From Mytilus edulis (taxonomy: Eukaryota), in contig NC_092354.1 of the NCBI RefSeq assembly GCF_963676685.1, forward strand, positions 61,566,001 to 61,630,000: a stretch of 64,000 bases of DNA, given 5' to 3'. Positions 500 through 14,710 of this stretch are shown in pieces. Position 1 is the stretch's first letter, and each line of letters opens with the position of its first letter. The notes under the pieces are model-generated. The model was not told the origin of the DNA. It saw only the letters and a list, made by a program, of their open reading frames with translations, and did not search any database. Made by a program: the position numbers and the translations under genes.

Positions 500-3400
500 T
501 TTCACTTTTCACATCATTGCGGTTATTCATTTATTAGGTGAAGAAAAATGTTAACAATTGGGGAAAAAGCAGAGTATTCATAACCATTTAAGTACATGTA
601 TACTTGAACCTTGATGCATAAGTCATTCTCAGACAACCGTTTAGGCAATCTTTTTTCGAACAAGAATGTTAAGTAATATATTGTACATGTTGTGAAAAAA
701 ACATTTTTTGGTATCTGTTCGAATATTTTTTAACCAAAATTAACCTAATATTTCTATAAAAAAAGTCTATTTATCAAAAACATGTTTTTATCAGTATTAT
801 TAGAAAGAATTAACTTTTTAAAATTATTTTTAAAGAAAACATACATGTCTTATATTTATTTCAAACAGAGGATGGCGTCTCGATACACTAGAAAGAAGAT
901 TGGCACACTATACACCTCTTCCTCCAATTAAACCAAAGTTAGTATTTCTCATCTATCATTGATTGAATAAGAGCTGCAGATATTTTTGATGGGTTTTGGA
1001 TTAGTTGATAACATATTTGTTACTTTTGTATTGTGCTATCTTGATGGTGTTTATTTATTAAGTGAAGAAAGACGTAAACTATTGTAAAAAACATCATTTT
1101 GTTATTAATACCATTTAAGTATATGTAAACTTGATTCATAACGCTTTTCAAGTCAATCGATAAGAAAATCTGTGTTTCAAACTAGCGTGAGATGGAATTG
1201 ATTGTAAAATGAAAATTTTATCTTTTATGTGTTCGTTTCGTTTCTAATCAAAATTTACGTAATGTTCTTTGAAACGGTCAACAACCAGCCTTTTCCTTTA
1301 TATTATTGTTAAAACAAACATCTACTCTATTTCTATTTTTTTTAAAGTTAAGTCATACATGTGTAATATTTATTTCTTACAGAAAAGTGACTCCCAAAGT
1401 ACACAAAGGAATATTTGAACATCTTTTATCAATGAAACCAGAGTTAGTATTGTAATTATCATTTATTGACCAAGAGCTGCAGATGTGTTCTGGTGTTGTT
1501 TTGGAATAGTTAAAAAATAACAAAAACAACTGAAAATCAAATTTGACTAAAATTATGTTGTTGTTGTATTGTGCTACCTTACGGTTAATTATAATTATTG
1601 AAAAAAAAAAAGATTGTCTATGACCATTTTACTATATGTACAACTATGTAAGCGTTGATTTATAAGGCGTTCCAAGTCAATCGCTTAGAAAAATCTGCTT
1701 TTCAGAAAGGCGTGTGATGGAATGAACAATCTGTTTTCAAATAGGCGTGTGATGGAATGTATTGGGTTTTTTTTATCTTGATGTGTTCGGTTCTTTCTAA
1801 TCCTAATTTGCATACCAAAAATACTGTTATATCAAACAATCATCTCTATTTCTTCTTTTTAAAATTAAGTCATAGTTGCATAATATTCATTTCTTACAGA
1901 AAAAATATTCCCGAAGTACACGAAGAAAGATCTGAACAGTTTACACCTTTTTCTTCGATGAAACATAAGTAAGTATTTCTTATATGCTATTGATTGAGCA
2001 ATAGCTGCTGATGTTCTTCTTCTTCTTTTTTTTGGTGTTCTTCTTCTTGATCTATGAATAAATTCTATTAAAGGCAGATTAAAATCCGAATGTTTGTGTC
2101 TTAAGTCGAGTTAATATCGATGCGTACAGTTACCTCCTAAATTACATTTATATAATGAAAACGTTTTTACTTATCATTTCGTTATTAACTACATTGTTGG
2201 TCTTGTGTTAGGAACAGTAAAGAGTAACAAAAACAACTAAAAGTTGAATTTTGATAACATTTTTGTTGTTTTTTTTATTTTGCTATCTTGATGGTATTTA
2301 TTTATTAAGTGAAGAAAGACGTAAACAATTGTAAAAAGAATCATTTTGTTATTATTAACATTTTAGTATATGTAAACCTTGATTCATAACACTTTTCAAG
2401 TCAATCGGTTAGGAAATCTGTGTTTCAAACTAGCGTGCTATGGAAAGAAATGTTAAGTAAAAATTTTATCTTTTATGTGTTCGTTTCATTTCTAATCATT
2501 TACGTAATGTTCCTATGAAACGGCCAAAAACCACGCTTTTCCTTTATATAATTGTTAAAACAAACTTCTACTCTATTTCTACTTTTCAAAATTAAGTCAT
2601 GCATGTATAATATTTATAATATTCCCAACAGAAAAGTGACCCCCGAAATACACGATGGAATATTTGAACAGTATTCACCTATTTCAACAATGAAACCTAA
2701 ATTAGTATTGTTATCATTTATTGACCAAGAGCTGCAGATGTGTTCTGATGTGGTTTTGGAATAGGTACAGTAACAAAAACAATTGAAAACCAAATTTAAA
2801 TAAAATGTTGTTGTTGTTGTATTGTGCTACCTTGATGTTTATTATTTATTTAGTCAAGAAACACCTTTTCAATTGTGAAAAATAGGTTGTTTTTTACCAT
2901 TTTATCATACATAAACCTTTATTCATAAGGCGTTCCAATTCAATCGCTTAGAACAGTCTGTTTTTCTAAAAAAAGAATAAAAAAGCGTTTGGTGGAATGT
3001 ATTGTAAAGAATTTTTTTTATCCAGATGTGTTGAGTCCATTTCTAATCCAAATTTACATACTTTTCCAAGAAAACAAAAGAACAACAATCACGTTTTCCT
3101 AAGTAATACTGTTATATCAAACACAATCTCTATTTCATATTTTTAAGTTAAGTCATACGTGTGTAAAATATGTATGAAACATAAGTAAGTATTTATCATA
3201 TGCTATTGATTGACCAATAGCTGCTGATGTTGTTATTCTTCTGTTTGTTGTTATTATTCTTCTTGATCTATGAATACATTTCATTAAGGGCAGATTAAAA
3301 CCCATGGTATGTTTGAGCCGCAAATCGAGTTAACTATCGATGCGTACAGTTATATCATAAATTTCATTATATGTAGACATTTATATAACGAAAATGTGTT

Positions 3401-4130
3401 TTCTAATTATTCTGTTATTTACTACATTGTTGGTCTTGTGTCTTCCACAGTTCTAATGTGGTTAAGGAATAGTAAAAAAGTAACAAAAACAACTCAAAAT
3501 TGTAATAACATTTTTGTTGTATTTTTGTTGTGCTATCTTGTTCATGACCATTTTTACTGTATGTAAACCTTGATTCATAAGGCGTTCAAAGTCAACCGCG
3601 TAGAAAATTCTGTTTTTCAAAAAAGCGTGTGATGGAATGAAAAGTCTTGATGTGTTCGGTCCATTCTAATCGAAATTTACTTACTATTCCAAGAAAAAAA
3701 GATCAACAATCACATTATTCATAAGTAATACTGTTATATCAAACATCATCTCTGTTTCTTCTTTTTTAAGTTAAATCATACATGTACTATATTTTTTAAC
3801 AGAAAAATTACTCCCGAAACACACGAAGGAAGACTTGAACAGTATACACCTTTTCCGTCAATTTTACCAAAGTTAGTATTTCTAATATATTATTGATTGA
3901 CCAAAAGCTGCTGATGTTGATCTACTTTTTTCTTCTTCTCCTTCTTGATCTATAAATACATATTTTTAAAGGCAGATTAATATACGCGTATTTGTGTGTC
4001 GCAAATTGAGTTAACTATTGATGCGTACAGTTATTTCTTAAATCTCATTATATGTAAACATTGATACAACTTATACGCTTTTTTTTAATCATTTTGTTAT
4101 TTGCTACATTGTTGGTGTTGTGTCTTCCAG
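500..4130. repeat. Degenerate tandem duplication of exon+intron units (about 0.5-0.7 kb)
   Basis: Intronic blocks recur with each exon copy, e.g. ttgtgctatcttgatgg, ttgattcataa(g)gcgtt, gagctgcagatgtgttct and gcgtgtgatggaatg. Confidence 0.85.
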
Positions 4131-4149
4131 ACCATGTAATTTGAACTAA
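869..4149 (+). CDS. 3' part of an unknown spliced gene made of tandemly duplicated short phase-2 exons (869-937, 1383-1442, 1900-1968, [2632-2700 donor-dead], 3803-3871, terminal 4131-4149)
   Basis: Each exon has a pyrimidine tract plus CAG acceptor and a GTTAGT/GTAAGT donor. Lengths are 69/60/69/69/69 nt (multiples of 3) and all are stop-free in one shared phase: GWRLDTLERRLAHYTPLPPIKP, KVTPKVHKGIFEHLLSMKP, KNIPEVHEERSEQFTPFSSMKH, KVTPEIHDGIFEQYSPISTMKP, KITPETHEGRLEQYTPFPSILP. The last exon (TTCCAG|A CCA TGT AAT TTG AAC TAA) closes in the same phase (PCNLN*). The start of the gene was not identified. Confidence 0.7.
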
Positions 4150-4770
4150 AAACATATTTTACATCAATCTATAGACATGAAATACACAATAGAGATAATC
4201 AAGAACGGAGGAAAGAAAATAGTTCTTATCCAATAACTATACTTTCACGAACAACAGACGTGCCAAGTAGGTAGGTACTCATTTACCGAAAGGTAGACTT
4301 ACTATTGTTTTCGTTAAATTTAAAAAAGAATGAATATTCCGTGTAATCAATTCTACTTTATTTCTTAAAATCGTGCATACATACTTCTGTTCTTTTGTTA
4401 TGTTGAATATTGTTTGATAACAAACTATTTATGTCCATTTGCCATCACTGGGCACCATCATGTCATCGTTATAAAGACCTATCTCAATTGACACCACGTC
4501 AACAATTTAAACTGATCAATCCCATGGGTAGCTAACATACATTGGTGTTTTTGTCTTTCAATCTACCACAAAATAATAAGGGGAAAATGCAAAAATGTTA
4601 GACACATTGATTGACAGAAGGATAGAGAAAATCAAATGGACGAAAAAGTATCTAACTGTTAAGAACTTTTTACTCTTCATATCTACCTTTATCATATGTT
4701 TAGTAGTAAAGACAGTAGTTGAATATGTGATAAATAGCCTGCTGTTTAATCCATATCTCGCAACTTTGAT

Positions 4771-4860
4771 GCGCACCCTTTATCGCATACCCTTTATCCC
4801 ACCCCTACCCTTTATTACATACCCTTTATCACACCTTTACCCTTTATCACACCCTTACTT
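4771..4860. repeat. Short ACCCTTTATC(A/G)C-type tandem array
   Basis: About 6 imperfect copies of (A)CCCTTTAT are visible directly. Confidence 0.7.
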
Positions 4861-5240
4861 TTTTTTTACAGTCAGTTTTTATTTATGTAATCTTAAGAAA
4901 TATTTTTCCTCAAAATAGGTACGGTCATCGGGTGTGACGCAATTTATTGAATGACGTGATTGTTTCGTATGTATATGTGACGTCACGAACGTCAAGTTTT
5001 CATATTTTTTGACACACTAAATGCAACTGTAAAAAATACAAAACACACAAAAAAATACAACAATAAACAATTTTTTTTTAAAACAACAGCACGCAAATTG
5101 TAAGGTAACCCAGGTGCTTTGGATAAGTAATTGAGCAGTTCTTTTAAGGCTTTTAAAACCAGACAAAAGTAGAACTGAAGGTAACCCAGTGAACAGTTCA
5201 TATAATATAACTCTCCCGTTGAAATATATAATAAAGCGTA

Positions 5241-8484: not shown

Positions 8485-8730
8485 TGCTCGACCAGTAAAA
8501 CCGAGCACATATTTTACTCGACTAGTCTCGACATTGTCTCAACTGTACTTAACTGTAATTAAGTGTACTCGACTATGTATCGACTTTACTTAATTTGTCT
8601 GATTCAGCACTTGATGATCTATGTGTAGTCTGAAATGGTCTTGACCAAGGCTCGACCTGTCTCGACCTGTCTCAACTAGTCTCGACTCAGTCTCAACAAG
8701 CCTCGACCTGTCTCGACTAGTCTTGGCCTT
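8485..8730. repeat. Cluster of CTCGAC/GTCTCGAC short repeats, possibly subterminal repeats of a DNA transposon end
   Basis: Many copies of (gt)ctcgac(ctgt/tagt). The cluster ends at GGCCTTTAA. Confidence 0.45.
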
Positions 8731-9261
8731 TAATAGTAGTTTTGACTGGTGTAAATCAGCCCATCTAACTAAATTAAATATTGATCTTACAGAATTCAAG
8801 CTTATTAGGTAGTTTGATTTATTGCTGTGAAATGAAAGAATTTAATTTTACAATAGGTAAAAATAAAAATTATTATATAAATTCAGCTAGGCATCTTTAA
8901 TTTTTTTTATAACTTTTTCAAACCAACTTGGATTTTCGATATTAATTGCTCTTGTGGCAAACTCAAGTTCATTCGTTCTCCTTTTGTGAATAGTAGGAGT
9001 TCACTTAAAAGGACTACCAAAACTGGCCATTATAAAAAAAAGGGAAATCAAATCTTATCCAAAGGATTCGGTTAACTATTATAAAAAGTCTAAAATTTAG
9101 AACGAAAACCTAACTTATTTATAGAAAAAAGAACACCATTTCGTTATAATAAAACACCCATGCAACCATGGTCATTTTAAGATACATTATTTGAATATAA
9201 TCAAATATAAAAGTAATTCATGTATCATAATATATTGATATATTTATATTTTAATTGTTCT

Positions 9262-9300
9262 TCAATAGATCTAGTTACTATGACCCATCATCAGGGGTCC
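9262..9300 (-). ncRNA. Partial hammerhead-like motif 3' of RT B
   Basis: The minus strand reads GGACCC-CUGAUGA-UGGGUC..UAGUAACUA..GAUCUA-UUGAAGAAC. The core and stem II are present, GAAA is degenerate, and no stem III or stem I partner is seen. Confidence 0.35.
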
Positions 9301-9319
9301 AACTGTCAATTTAATTTTA

Positions 9320-10770
9320 AACTTATACGCAACTATTGGTGCTGTTTTGAGTATTTGTACACAATCTTCGTCGAACTGTAATAAATAACAGTGTTTCAGT
9401 ATACGTTTCTTTATTTTACGACCCTTTTTAGTAATTCATTACGGTCAATTGATAAAGCATCAGTAATGCTATCCTCTATTTCCACGTAATTCATAACCCC
9501 TATCTTATAATTTCACTTTGGAATTAGTTAGATTGTTTATTAAAATATATAATTTGTTATGGTCACTTGTGTTTTTAATTTGCCGTATTGCTTAACCTTT
9601 ATAAATCCTCTGAATACATGCTGTGAGTGACAGCTCAGGCGCGGATCCAGAGGGGGGTTCCGGGGGTTGGAACCCCCCCTTTTTTTGGACGATCAATGCA
9701 TTTGAATGGGGACATGTAATTGGAACCCCCCTCTCTTTGTCCTGGGTTAGGAACCCCCCCTTTTTAAAATGGCTGGATCCGCCCCTGCAGCTACTTCTGT
9801 GCAGAAACAGATAAGAATTTATTTCTTTAAAATGTATTTCAAGGTCATGAATGCCATGTGTTGTAAATCTTTGACCTTTAATTACATCAACATCTAAAAA
9901 CGACATTTTATCGTTTTTGATTTCATAAGGGGTTATAATAATTTGCTAGACGAAAAAAGTCTATAATTTCGTCTGACATTCCATCCTATATTATGAATTC
10001 ATCGTCTCTATATCTGCCATGATAGAATATTTTGTCTTTATATTGAAATGCAGAAATAATTTGATTCATTATCTCGAACATAAGTATGTCACAAATTTCC
10101 GGTGAAGGAACTTCACCAATTGCCGTACTTATTATTTGTTTGTAAATTTTCCCATCAAATTCAAATACATTGTTTTCTAAAATGATTCTCAACAAATGTA
10201 TCAATATATTGACTGGCGGAGCATTAACTTTGAAGTTGGATTTGTCAAAACTGTCATAGGCTCGTTCAACCGCACTCAATAACGCTTCTTGATGTAGATT
10301 GGTAAACATCTGTGTTATATCATACGAAACCAACAGGCTGATTGCCAAAGGATTTGATTTCTCAATGATATTAATGAACAATGTAGTATATGTAGACTGA
10401 TTTTAAACTATTGGTTCAGTTACAGAACAACACTGTGATATAATTGGTCTGCCAGGTGGAATTATATTCAATTCATGTAATCCATCATGTTGAATTTGTT
10501 TAAACGTCTCTGTCTCAAGACGGTGAATTTGTTAAAAATTTAAATGATATTTTGTCTATTACGCCTTGGTCGTATAATGATTTATCATACACTTAATGAC
10601 CTAGATTTGTGGTTCTGCCATGTTAAATGAACCTAATTTAATGTAATGTTAAGTATTTAGTTGTCTTGTGACTTTTGTTATGTAGTCTAGCCTGTCTAAG
10701 ATAACATAATTTGAATTTTTATCTGCCTTTTTTATTGCTATTGTTTCATCATTTTTCAAATTGCGTACGC
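9320..10770 (-). pseudogene. Penelope-like reverse transcriptase B (5'-truncated, decayed, no GIY-YIG seen)
   Basis: Minus-strand motifs IKKADK, PPGRPIISQC, LLVSYDITQMFTNL, LENNVFEFDGKIYKQ, AIGEVPSPEICDI, GRYRDDEFII, FLDV, YLFLHRSSCH..HVFRGFIKG and PIVAYK. Contains stops, frameshifts and a MITE insertion. Confidence 0.85.
9636..9787. mobile_element. 152-bp MITE with CAG...CTG ends and a 5-bp TSD (hAT5-like, inferred)
   Basis: TIRs CAGGCGCGGATCCAG / CTGGATCCGCCCCTG. TSD CAGCT at 9631-9635 and 9788-9792. Removing the element and one TSD restores the RT thumb motif LHRSSCHSQHVFRGFIKG. Confidence 0.9.
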
Positions 10771-10805
10771 AAATATTTCAATAAAATAAGCCTATCCCAG
10801 CACCC

Positions 10806-10897
10806 AAACTCCATACATCATAAGGTGTTTCGAACATCTATTTAGACCAATTAGAATGAACAAATTGACCATGGCCATGTTTATCGTCAGGAGCCCA
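10806..10897 (-). ncRNA. Degenerate type I hammerhead ribozyme motif 3' of RT A
   Basis: The minus strand reads GGCUC-CUGACGA-[long stem II AACAU..GGUCAAUU/AAUUGGUC..AUGUU]-C-GAAA-CACC-UUAU-GAUG-UA-UGGAGUU. Stem III has one mismatch and stem I is out of register by about 2 nt. Confidence 0.55.
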
Positions 10898-11066
10898 AGC
10901 CATTGCATAGTGACACTAATTTCAAAAATACTGTAATTTTTATTAAGGACTCGACACTTGGTGATCTGTAGGACTAATATTTTTCTATACTCTTTATCTA
11001 CTTAACCTTGTTTATCAATTTAACGAATACAGTATAGAATATATTTCTATAAACTGCAACATATTA

Positions 11067-12990
11067 ATTACCTAGAGTTCCTGATGTTACTGTGTCTTTC
11101 AAGTTTGTATGCCTACGGAAGGCAAACAGACGTCTTTTATCAAATAAAAGTTTTGCCTCTTCGTCATCATTAAGTTATCCCAGAGTTTTAAGATATTGTT
11201 CTTTATATGTGATTTCTGTCTTGAAAACACTGTGGAGAGTACCAAGGGAGGCGACTGTAATACAGATTTGGGTTTTCCTATTAATGTGTCCTTTCTTTGT
11301 TTTGCAGTCACGTCCTGCATAACAGTTTTAATTTCATTTTTTGGACATCCCTTTTTAATAAGGCGCTCAGAAAATAACTCATATTGTGTTTGCAAATCTA
11401 CTGGACTGTTTGTACACCCCTCAAAACGAAGCATTTCTCCTTTAATTATGCTTCTGAAAGAAGAGGATGGGTGGCATCAGGACCTCTCTTAGTACTGATA
11501 ATATTCAGTTCTTTTTGGAATGTCGTGAGGTTTAAGATTCCTGTTTCTCTAAATGTTGTGGCCTTTGAATAAATACACACCTAAAAACTGCATTTTAGTT
11601 TGTGATTTTTCTTGTGTAAATGTGCATGGCGTCTGTTATCATGTTAAAAAAATTATGCTTTTTTATCATCAGTACCTGCATTGTAAATGAAAAAGCCATC
11701 GTCCGTTAACCTATAGAGGCTTGATATTTTCTGTTTATGTTGGAAAGTCTTTAGAATACTATTTGAGACTTAGTAAACTCTCAGATCCGTACTTTCAGGT
11801 GATAAACTATTTCCCATTGGAACTTCGTTTTTGAAGTTTTATAAAAAATACCATAGAACATAAATTCGTTATTTTAAGGAACTATCTTTAGAAGTTCCAA
11901 TATATATCGCAGCGGTGGTAATAGTATCGTATGTAAACATTTAATTATCGTAGGCCAAGCATGCTTGACTGCTTCAACTATTTCTATATGGGACATATTG
12001 TTGTACATTTCTTTTATGTCAAAACTAAGTAGACGTCAGGTTTTACCTGCAATTTCTTAATAATATTTTTAAATTATAATGAGTCTCTTAAATGGGTCTC
12101 TTGTTTTACTACTGCTGGAAGCATGAATTTATCGAAATACTTCCCTATTCTCTCTAAAACAGTACCCGATAATGAAACAATAAACCTTCTTTGAATACTT
12201 ACATTTTGATACAGTGTAGGATTCTGTTGAACCCTTTCTATTAGTTCAGAATCCAGTTTGTGCAATTGAGGCAGAAGATACAACCTTCCTGGTTTATGAT
12301 CTCTCTTAGCAGAAGTTATTTAAACGTGATTTCATCCATGACCCCTTTGCTATGCATTCCAAAGATAATAGTATTGATTTTCTGGTTGGTCTCTATTATT
12401 TCTAATTTTGCAATTTCTATGAAGTGGGTAGCACTACTCAATTGCATCAGTCCTTCATTTATATATTCTGTTTTAACCCAGATCACTGAAGTATCATTTT
12501 TATCTGCTTTTCGAATAACTATGTTTTTGTTTAGTTTCGGGAAAGAAATTGCCTTTCTTTCCAGCGTAGTGCGATTATCGTGTGCTTTTTAAATTGTTAT
12601 ATTATCTATCTCAATTTTAGTTTTGAATATATATGTCTCAATTGCACTGTTTGCAAGTTCCGGTTCATATCCTGATTTTGTATAATAGTCCCAGGAAGTT
12701 AATTCATATGCACTACTATTTTGTTTTCAAATATCAAAATATAGGGCTGTGTGGCATATTTTCAACGTTTATATGCCTGGAATTTTTAAGAATTTTAACT
12801 TTAACTAATATTGTGTACTACGTACATGTACCTTGTACGCTTAACTCGACCAAAAGATTTATTAATATCATATATCTCCCAAACATGGTTTGTGGAACAG
12901 CTGTACCATGTGCAATTTATAGCATGTTTAATTCCGACATTCTACCAATTTTATCAAAAGTTGAACTTAAATTATCAGAGATGATATCTG
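11067..12990 (-). pseudogene. Penelope-like (Neptune-type N-terminus) reverse transcriptase A, near full length, decayed, ends without GIY-YIG
   Basis: Motifs YTKSGYEPELANSAIETY, IVIRKADK, PGRLYLLPQLHK, FDIKEMYNN, PMGNSLSPESTDL, YRLTDDGFF, QFLG, CHPSSSFRSIIKGEMLRF, LIKKG, PLVLST and AFRRHTNLKD, then a stop. Multiple in-frame stops and frameshifts. Confidence 0.85.
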
Positions 12991-14710
12991 TGAAATAAAA
13001 AGAATATTTGACTAGAATATAAAGCCATTGCCCGGCATGCATTTCCCACCATCATCGTCAAGCAACCTGTTAAAAGAGCTAACACTAAGCATTTGTCTTA
13101 TTTTACTTACAACCCTAGAGACTAAGTGTTTAAATTTTCGTGTGTCCCGGTGTTATTAATAAAAATCTTAAAGATTTCAAGTATAAAAAAACAGGACAAC
13201 GTTCGTCATAACATGATTTCAAAACTTTCAACATCGATTTCAATCAAATGGTTTGAGTGTTCATGCCGAACGCTCACGTGGTACCAAATGAACTCAACCT
13301 TATACACATGTTATACGGGGATGATAAAACGCGATGATTCCGTTAAAAAAGTTTTGAGCGGGAAATACAAATATAAGATTTTCGATAGGAACGAAAAGAT
13401 AAATAAAAATAAAATATTGCTGGCAAATACAAATAAAGATTTTCAGTCGGAACGAATTTATAGGATCGGTCGGTAAAGGGCAAACACACAATATTTTAAT
13501 TTAAGCCTGATTTTTAACAAAACTATTTGCAGTTTGTCCACCAATATCATATGTTGTTAAATGAAATATGAATTAATGTTTTTGAATCATATGTTTTCTC
13601 GTTTAAAAAAACAAAGGCTTTCAATTTCCAGTTAAAAACATGCCAACTTTAAGTTTAAATTTTATATAGGAATGGTTTATTATTTATGTCTTCGTCATTC
13701 CAGTGACCCTTGCTGATAAGTGCATCTAAAATATTAACAAATTGAGCCTGAAATAAGGCATTCATTTTTTGAAAGTGATTAGCCAAAAAATTGAGGAATA
13801 CCAATAAACAGGCTAAAATACAAAAATATGACGAAAGAAAGTTTTTACGACCAAACGAAAATTGAAATATAGATATTTTTCTATCATTTAAAACGATTCC
13901 CAGTCGTGTGTTATTCTGGTACATTTAACGCATTAATTAATTGTCTTTTTTAAGATCATTTGCAGTACTAGTAGATAAAGTTATAACATTTAATTTCAAA
14001 GCACGTGATAAATTCATTTTTTCCCCGTTTATTTCTATTCTGTACTTAAACAATTAATGTACTAAAAGTTGAGTCGGGTTTAAAGTAAAATATACGTCAA
14101 TATTTACAAAATAACTAAAAAAATAAACAAAGCATTCTTATTTCAGCACTGGTTATGGATCAATTTTTTCAGGTACGGTTATTTGTAAGAATGAACAAAT
14201 GTACATATCTATCTGAATCATATGCAATAATTGAGGTATCTAAAGTGATGCTCAAGGCCCAACATTAGATAGCTCTAATTGGATGCCTAAATCGTGGAAT
14301 TGTGTCTACAACTTTTACTTATCTATAAAATATTTGATGGTTGCATGCATAGACACTATTCAGATTTAGTGTCTTTATTATTGAAATTTAAGCAATTCTT
14401 TTAGCTTCCTTCCAAAATGTCTAACCATACTATATCTAAAAACAGGCAAGTATTGAAATATCACAACAAAATTAAGAATAATAGATAAAAGACATGTTTC
14501 TTAAATATATTTTCCCGCGTTTCGGAGTATAGCGGGAAAATGTTGTCTAAAAGGAACGTTTTATAAGAACGGTATATATTTTTGGCGGGTTTTGTTATGT
14601 GTAGTTGTACACGTGGTTACGTGGACCAATCATTTGGATTGTGGTGAAAGCTGGTTTTTAATTTTCATGTGTTTGAAAATCATTCTAGCCGCAGACGTTC
14701 AACACTAAAC

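Follow-up and report, generated by a model that had tools for sequence, protein, structure and literature searches.

The stretch of Mytilus edulis DNA analysed here, called the window (64,000 nt, contig NC_092354.1, positions 61,566,001 to 61,630,000 of the forward strand; C11:61566001-61630000 in the genome searched, which has 1.37 Gb and 14 large contigs), carries between positions 9137 and 12687 two different reverse transcriptase (RT) remnants, both on the minus strand and co-oriented, that were delimited by blastx and by BLASTN against intact relatives from the same genome. The two segments, 12687-10770 and 10769-9137, are almost certainly dead copies, each truncated at the 5' end, that derive from two families (A and B) of endonuclease-less Penelope-like elements (PLEs) forming a lineage in bivalves. 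The original prediction, made from the letters alone, had already recognised two decayed, co-oriented RTs on this strand, and blastx and DNA alignment bear it out, including the decay of both copies; the span that it gave, 9262-12990, is replaced by 9137-12687, and an unrelated interspersed repeat lies from 12696 upward.

Copy A matches family A DNA over window positions 12681-10770 (89% identity over 1933 nt), and its RT remnant, which corresponds to the second open reading frame (ORF2) of the family, occupies 11067-12687 and covers residues 145-688 of a 688-aa frame in six blastx pieces of alternating frame, with 62-85% identity and many stops; ORF1 and the first 144 residues of ORF2 are missing. 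The frame ends in ...LFAFRRHTNLKDTVTSGTLGN and a stop, past the linker and with neither CxxC nor GIY-YIG, as had been predicted. It is followed by a 3' untranslated tail (10770-11066) that reaches the 3' terminus of the family, ...TTGAAATATTTG, the same terminus being found in tandem arrays and in solo copies, and this tail contains a damaged type III hammerhead (10816-10963), identified with our own descriptor and by comparison with intact family A. Copy B begins at 10769, 46 nt past the 3' edge of the copy A ribozyme, in agreement with the proposal that a 5'-truncated RT follows the first hammerhead-like motif closely. It matches family B DNA over 10779-9137 at 84-88% identity, falling to 73% in the 3' tail, and its decayed RT remnant (9325-10769) covers residues 155-638 of a 659-aa frame. 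The damage to copy B includes deletions near the end of the ORF, a 67-nt deletion in the 3' tail at about 9168 and a 152-bp insertion with terminal inverted repeats (9636-9787), resembling a miniature inverted-repeat transposable element (MITE), which interrupts the RT remnant and appears as a gap in the alignment; the 3' tail (9137-9324) extends to the 3' terminus of the family and retains the 5' half of a type I hammerhead. The junction between the two copies (10769-10770) is direct, since the alignments place the exact 3' terminus of family A (10770) against an internal position of the B unit, at about 800 (10769), with at most a few bases shared.

Both families are represented by intact copies elsewhere in the genome. 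A 138-aa piece of B has at least 150 genome matches (3026 first-look candidates), many of them within open frames 655-659 aa long, and for a 125-aa piece of A there are likewise at least 150 (588 first-look candidates), many in open 688-aa frames; many matches of both families stand in tandem, with periods of 2559-2566 bp for B and 4262 bp for A. The full-length unit of family A (4260-4262 bp) comprises an ORF1 of 266 aa, an RT-encoding ORF2 of 683-688 aa that ends in ...LFAFRRHKNLKDIVTSATLNN and a stop, and a 3' tail, about 300 nt long, that holds the type III hammerhead, and that of family B (2559 bp) comprises a single RT ORF of 653-659 aa, ending in ...APIVAYSKHKSIGDMLSRSKLKTLTLN and a stop, and a type I hammerhead from 14 nt past the last codon; the two families are about 34% identical as protein. 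The apparent end of the copy B RT at PIVAYK, reported in the original prediction, is in part an artefact of the deletions, as intact B ORFs are 20 aa longer, although they still contain no endonuclease. Nine more diverged families are present in the genome, with RT frames of 589-675 aa and, in five of the nine, a further ORF upstream that measures about 155-232 aa from its first Met. In ten of the eleven families (A, B and eight others) the RT frame ends 20-33 aa past the start of the linker P[IMV][IV]AYK.HKN, and in the eleventh (L039) it stops just before the linker.

The search for an endonuclease relied on a hidden Markov model (HMM) of GIY-YIG built from the domains of five endonuclease-bearing relatives, which matches 52 of 122 proteins; none of the 51 best-ranked proteins (P0001-P0051) is among them, and families A and B are likewise unmatched. 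At E<=10 the model finds nothing in the six frames of 48 genomic stretches (339,191 bases, with some overlap), at either ORF end or elsewhere, so that the full-length relatives, in which the original prediction had placed its own refutation, provided no GIY-YIG domain. Pfam detects in intact A and B a weak RVT_1 alone, under the cut-off, and returns nothing useful on the stop-free pieces of the window. On the evidence of these sequences, the bivalve lineage is one that encodes no endonuclease. The ORF1 of family A has no Pfam domain and has homologues in Mytilus alone; its AlphaFold model (mean predicted local distance difference test, pLDDT, of 50) consists of long helices and a disordered basic tail and is too poor for a fold search, and, as far as a model of this low confidence can tell, ORF1 may contain a nuclease fold.

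The absence of the domain extends to a large group of proteins. A library of representatives at 50% identity yields 1043 matching proteins at E<=1e-30; GIY-YIG is missing from all 24 of the top-ranked full-length representatives that are new, and the 87 new representatives of at least 590 aa divide into 37 without and 50 with it. A quick IQ-TREE analysis of 110 rows (11 genome ORFs and 99 database proteins of at least 590 aa, with P0001 and P0002 left out) is split by a branch with full support in the Shimodaira-Hasegawa-like approximate likelihood ratio test (SH-aLRT 100) into 50 rows, none with GIY-YIG, and 60 rows, of which 51 carry a C-terminal GIY-YIG and nine do not, these nine being probably truncated models. 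The named members of the endonuclease-less group come from Mytilus edulis, M. trossulus, Saccostrea cucullata, S. echinata and Pinctada imbricata, and the best protein match, at 98% identity, is to an M. edulis protein. Their ORFs continue past the linker start for a median of 21 aa, in contrast with 172.5 aa, through CxxC and GIY-YIG, in the others, and 46 of the 50 end 16-33 aa past this point. RT motif B also separates the two sides, reading SPE[IV][CS]D[IL]R with variants in the endonuclease-less group and AP.YAN[IL]FM in the other rows, and SPExxD, which had been noted in both window copies as unusual, is a signature of the whole group. The RT itself aligns over its full length to proteins with a C-terminal GIY-YIG (E 1e-52 to 1e-81), and the linker motif is common to both.

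Hammerhead ribozymes, located with our own descriptor, accompany these RTs in two permuted forms. The type I form was sought in 13 post-ORF regions and is complete in five, all of the B group (B, L030, L032, L041 and L042), where it starts 14-27 nt past the last codon and reads helix I (5-6 bp), CUGA(U/A)GA, usually a bulged U, helix II (5 bp) with a loop of 37-119 nt, GAAAC, helix III (6-7 bp) and then GUC or GUA. In the alignment of these five, 96.9% of the cells pair and five pairs contain compensatory changes, a result matched by none of 500 shuffles, while slid controls reach 12-45%. The type III form occurs in family A, L035, L036 and L039, and as a remnant in the window copy A, in the order helix III 5' strand, GUC, helix I with a loop of 40-81 nt, CUGA(C/U)GA, helix II, GAAAC and helix III 3' strand; L034 fails the descriptor. 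Helices I and III of this form vary in sequence between families and retain their complementarity; the type III helices were read by script, the MAFFT alignment being wrong in the 5' half of this group. Folding by minimum free energy recovers helix III in family A (z = -5.55) and helices I and III, without helix II, in family B. Folding of family A by hand as type I leaves a G at position 17; the type III topology fits instead. From the descriptor and covariation, the hammerheads of the intact A-group and B-group relatives are judged to be genuine.

Since the intact relatives carry real hammerheads, the motifs seen in the window can be read as genuine ribozyme remnants. Copy A retains the helix III 5' strand and GUC (10963-10953), the helix I 5' strand (10952-10947), the helix I 3' strand with CUGACGA (10896-10884) and CGAAAC with the helix III 3' strand (10832-10816), with the predicted cut between 10953 and 10952; relative to intact family A it has an A in place of G10.1 in helix II, and one pair of helix III is mismatched. 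From the last codon it is 176 nt to the CUGACGA core (10890-10884), close to the 170 nt or so originally estimated. In copy B, GGACCC-CUGAUGA (9300-9288, helix I 5' strand and CUGAUGA) stands alone; this is the CUGAUGA that had been noticed after the second RT, and the 67-nt deletion has removed the helix II 3' strand, GAAAC, helix III, the cut site and the helix I 3' strand. Elsewhere on the minus strand of the window there are three small canonical type I hammerheads, with CUGAUGA from 45910, 46275 and 63073 and a helix II of 4 bp; in two of these a palindromic GCGC loop closes helix III, and two of the three are 365 bp apart, like a retrozyme repeat.

The original prediction had drawn an analogy with telomeric elements, which the distribution of the lineage does not support. 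TTAGGG is the telomere repeat of mussels, and runs of two or more TTAGGG/CCCTAA units are absent from the 339,191 bases; the 22 loci are all 5-55 Mb away from the ends of their contigs, and the lineage is interstitial, not telomeric. In four RNA runs of 2026, read depth on B is 0-5x in two runs and 0-3x in the remaining pair, and on the family A tail it reaches up to 16x in one run, which shows weak expression of both families.

The arrangement of the copies was examined in 17 loci mapped against one natural unit per family. Intact relatives form co-oriented RT-RT chains, as anticipated, in which 5'-truncated copies, each continuing to the exact 3' terminus, abut the next copy, and they also form inverted ones, in which two chains face each other head-to-head with their truncated 5' ends in contact (L029, L043, L025 and L045). 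The element 3' termini are located 190 nt (A) and 58 nt (B) past the cut sites, and in arrays the 5' end of one unit directly adjoins the 3' end of its neighbour, so that the elements are not delimited by their ribozymes as had been proposed; the junction anatomy fits the stacking by template jumping that had also been suggested. Both families include, in addition, fragments that extend from the exact base after the predicted cut to the 3' terminus: for family A (unit position 4071) one in L018, two stacked in tandem in L046 and one in L047, and for family B (unit position 2502) two adjacent ones in L044. L046 and L047 were picked for a hit spacing of 188-189 bp and are a biased sample, and L018 and L044 were picked on other grounds; a hand count in the latter two gives starts at the single predicted base in one of about 24 cases for A and two (adjacent) of about 13 for B, the units being 4260 and 2559 nt long. 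Because these fragments start exactly at predicted cut sites, we infer that the ribozymes would cut in vivo and that the RT would run off the new 5' end and then switch to another RNA.

Direct junctions between A and B are found in three of the 17 mapped loci. In L021 the 3' end of A joins internal B, head-to-tail as in the window, with the breakpoint at B position 2133, and in L025 and L045 the A-B pairs are head-to-head. The pair in L045, with both 3' ends outward, is situated inside a highly transcribed retrozyme-like hammerhead repeat, and RNA reads from uninterrupted copies of this host repeat join across the insertion site; the comparison, made by eye and with paralogous copies, suggests no target duplication, the loss of a few target bases and a 4-nt T/A overlap at the B 3' junction. 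Such a head-to-head pair fits priming from both ends of one break. The host repeat (L045 2100-5100, C6:24.07 Mb) is covered at 100-500x in the four RNA runs, and the reads that skip the pair, with joints from 2449 to 4941 or 4959, reconstruct the empty site.

Other features of the arrays can be recorded here. L025 (1-2707, C12:50.108 Mb) contains an internally deleted family A of about 2.07 kb (unit positions 1-305, 1157-2352 and 3699-4260), without ORF1 and most of the RT, that forms its own tandem array beside a B array, indicating that non-autonomous derivatives of the lineage are amplified as well. Family A arrays end with an extra fragment of 85-91 nt from unit position 4170 (L027 1131-1220, L021 1013-1103 and C9:50603797-50603886), a recurrent truncation point that differs from the ribozyme cut site. 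A related family repeated in tandem in L041 (C11:40.02 Mb) and the matching contig C407 has RT frames that would be open but for one or two in-frame TGA codons, common to the copies, which may reflect a nonsense mutation that was inherited or else recoding of the codon; Naiad PLEs encoding selenoproteins are reported in clams in the published account of that group (PMC8557442).

These observations can be combined in a mechanism in which the RT would start cDNA synthesis at a fixed point of the RNA (...ATATTTG in A, ...AAAATG in B), primed by a free genomic 3'-OH and not by a nick of its own making, and would proceed toward the RNA 5' end. After an early stop, or after run-off at an RNA end, including one made by the hammerhead, it would take up another RNA at its 3' end; a series of such switches would generate co-oriented chains, and priming from both ends of one break would generate head-to-head pairs. 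In the window, synthesis would have begun on B RNA, at its 3' end (9137), and reached B position about 800, before a switch to the 3' end of an A RNA and a stop at about residue 145 of A ORF2; both copies would have decayed afterwards, and the MITE would have landed in B. We give slightly better than even chances to the origin of the window pair in such a single event of template switching, and regard the explanation as a whole, namely an endonuclease-less lineage with hammerheads and template switching that left a dead pair in the window, as probable.

The strongest competitor, although we consider it rather unlikely, is that the pair results from two separate insertions, B having been inserted first and truncated, and A having been primed later from a break or nick at the upstream edge of B, perhaps with deletion of more of B. 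The window junction is indeed unique, the lineage often lands beside its own kind, and the identity to active families differs between A (89%) and B (84-88%); nevertheless, no B sequence is found upstream of A, the exact 3' terminus of A abuts B without filler, and A-B junctions in three of 17 other mapped loci are far above chance for moderately repeated families in 1.37 Gb, a recurrence that fits co-insertion. Less probable still is a later rearrangement, by deletion or end-joining, that brought together two unrelated old copies: the region is old, with other indels and a MITE insertion, but a random deletion would need to end exactly at the natural 3' terminus of A. The repeated association of A and B could also be explained by a composite two-RT element moving as one unit, as had been suggested, yet among the best 40 of 165 candidates scored no second copy of the exact junction was found, the window itself being the single match across it and the other 45 matches listed covering the A or the B side, and the other A-B junctions differ in breakpoint and orientation; given this uniqueness of the window junction, the pair is no composite element multiplying as one unit, and we attach very little weight to this explanation. 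That the copies are local deletion derivatives of ordinary endonuclease-bearing PLEs is scarcely credible, since, in spite of the resemblance of the linker before the stop to the RT-endonuclease linker of endonuclease-bearing relatives, eleven diverged families are without GIY-YIG, 46 of 50 proteins of the group end shortly after the linker start, the domain is absent from the 339 kb and the group lies on one side of a well-supported branch.

Several points weigh against the preferred explanation of serial template switching by an endonuclease-less, hammerhead-bearing lineage. Retrotransposition, template switching and ribozyme cleavage are all read from sequence alone, the A|B junction of the window is unique, so that two separate insertions compete for this pair, and both window hammerheads are damaged. 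Rfam reports no hammerhead at its gathering threshold in the window or in 16 loci (143 kb), and none in E-value mode in window positions 8500-14500, L025, L027 and two short stretches; the model RF00163 works in this genome, where 26 of 74 scored candidates are above the cut-off, and the hammerheads that it misses have loops of 24-119 nt in the element families and include the three small canonical ones of the window. RNA reads show no pile-up at the cut sites at 0-16x coverage, which is too thin to see them. The footprints could correspond to a few events later multiplied by duplication, the B fragments of L044 being adjacent and L046 and L047 having been preselected by spacing. The tree is unrooted and was obtained by a quick search without named reference clades, so that it does not decide between primary absence and loss of the endonuclease. 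Finally, GIY-YIG sequences are present elsewhere in the genome (858 first-look candidates; of 150 scored, six reach E<=1e-5, including one within an open frame of 755 aa), and with such genes at hand the endonuclease is possibly supplied in trans.

Two neighbours of the pair do not belong to the elements. The MITE-like sequence is, in contrast to the old copy B that contains it, young and high-copy, as all of the best 40 of 2955 first-look candidates scored are at 91-98% identity. The flanking sequence at 12696-13511 belongs to the end of an interspersed repeat of a different, unrelated kind, with 1768 first-look candidates, and those genome matches that extend into this part of it stop within a few bases of 12696, about 10 nt upstream of the truncated 5' end of copy A; it may be a third member of the chain or a mere neighbour.

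RT homology, a hammerhead 3' of the RT and tandem or inverted arrangement identify the bivalve lineage as Penelope-like, and its closest parallels among known systems, as far as the cited accounts describe them, differ in location, depth or ribozyme structure. Athena and Coprina are endonuclease-less PLE clades found at or near telomeres and attached via reverse-complement telomeric repeats (PMC8557442); they share with the window lineage an RT without endonuclease, hammerhead motifs and co-oriented chains, but by these descriptions they are telomeric, in contrast to the bivalve elements, which are interstitial and without TTAGGG runs. The Neptune-like MjPLE01 of the kuruma shrimp and the Chlamys PLE-X families are described as losses of the endonuclease inside endonuclease-bearing clades (PMC8557442). 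Like the bivalve lineage they are interstitial and would need another source of 3'-OH; compared by description, however, they are single families, whereas the bivalve group is deep, with 50 proteins, at least 11 families in one genome, and members in mussels, oysters and pearl oysters. According to the same source, Naiads dominate bivalve genomes; their endonuclease is N-terminal, and they lack a canonical hammerhead (PMC8557442); Naiad and Chlamys elements resemble the bivalve lineage as abundant Penelope-like RTs of bivalves, and differ from it in their N-terminal GIY-YIG and, for Naiads, in the hammerheads, since the bivalve lineage has hammerheads and no GIY-YIG at either end.

Canonical PLEs (Penelope/Poseidon, Neptune and Nematis), as portrayed in the cited studies, have in common with the bivalve lineage a homologous RT, copies arranged in tandem or inverted, a bulged base where helix II begins and extension from both target strands (PMC4209133, PMC11167929), the last having been described in vitro for an Anolis element (PMC11167929). 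In their case the hammerheads are in flanking repeats, and the bivalve lineage differs in having no C-terminal CxxC and GIY-YIG and in having an ORF1 in many families. The C-terminal GIY-YIG that Hydra elements likewise carry is also missing from it. The type I hammerheads described for metazoan elements are minimal and dimer-dependent and have the same bulge at helix II (PMC4209133), in contrast to those of the bivalve lineage, which are complete, with a stable helix III of 5-14 bp and long loops, and of type III in the A group. Non-LTR retrozymes, in the preprint that presents them (bioRxiv 10.64898/2026.07.22.740005), are likewise tandem hammerhead-bearing units, and the stacked 190-nt cleavage-product units of family A resemble a nascent retrozyme; the bivalve elements differ from them in that they encode their own RT and in that their unit ends lie 58 or 190 nt past the cut sites.

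In the literature searched we found no description of a bivalve endonuclease-less group, although Repbase or the supplements of papers may contain one. Taken together, and with chances that we place somewhat below even, the data may represent an undescribed, deep and diverse superfamily of endonuclease-less PLEs in pteriomorph bivalves, often with an ORF1, intrachromosomal, and with complete hammerheads in two permuted topologies, whose copies would record cleavage in vivo, run-off and serial switching; A, with two ORFs, and B, with the RT only, would have been co-inserted repeatedly at the same breaks, suggesting a common ribonucleoprotein or a dependence of B on A. In terms of the lineage itself, which encodes no endonuclease as far as its sequences indicate and had been put forward in the original prediction on the basis of the two window copies, intact relatives that stop after the linker and have hammerheads 3' of the RT support its existence.

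Endonuclease-less PLEs are thought to be confined to chromosome ends, and a large intrachromosomal group in bivalves poses the question of the primer source, for which the candidates are breaks, intermediates of replication or an enzyme taken over from neighbouring elements. On the role of the hammerhead in PLEs, a 2024 in vitro study of the Anolis element describes no RNA ends at the cut site and a reaction that does not need cleavage, within the scope of that account (PMC11167929); in the bivalve lineage, two families include DNA copies that begin precisely at the predicted cuts. The window pair itself is dead DNA, and the interest resides in the lineage and in its cleavage footprints, which, if true, would mean that the ribozyme acts in vivo on the RNAs used by the RT.

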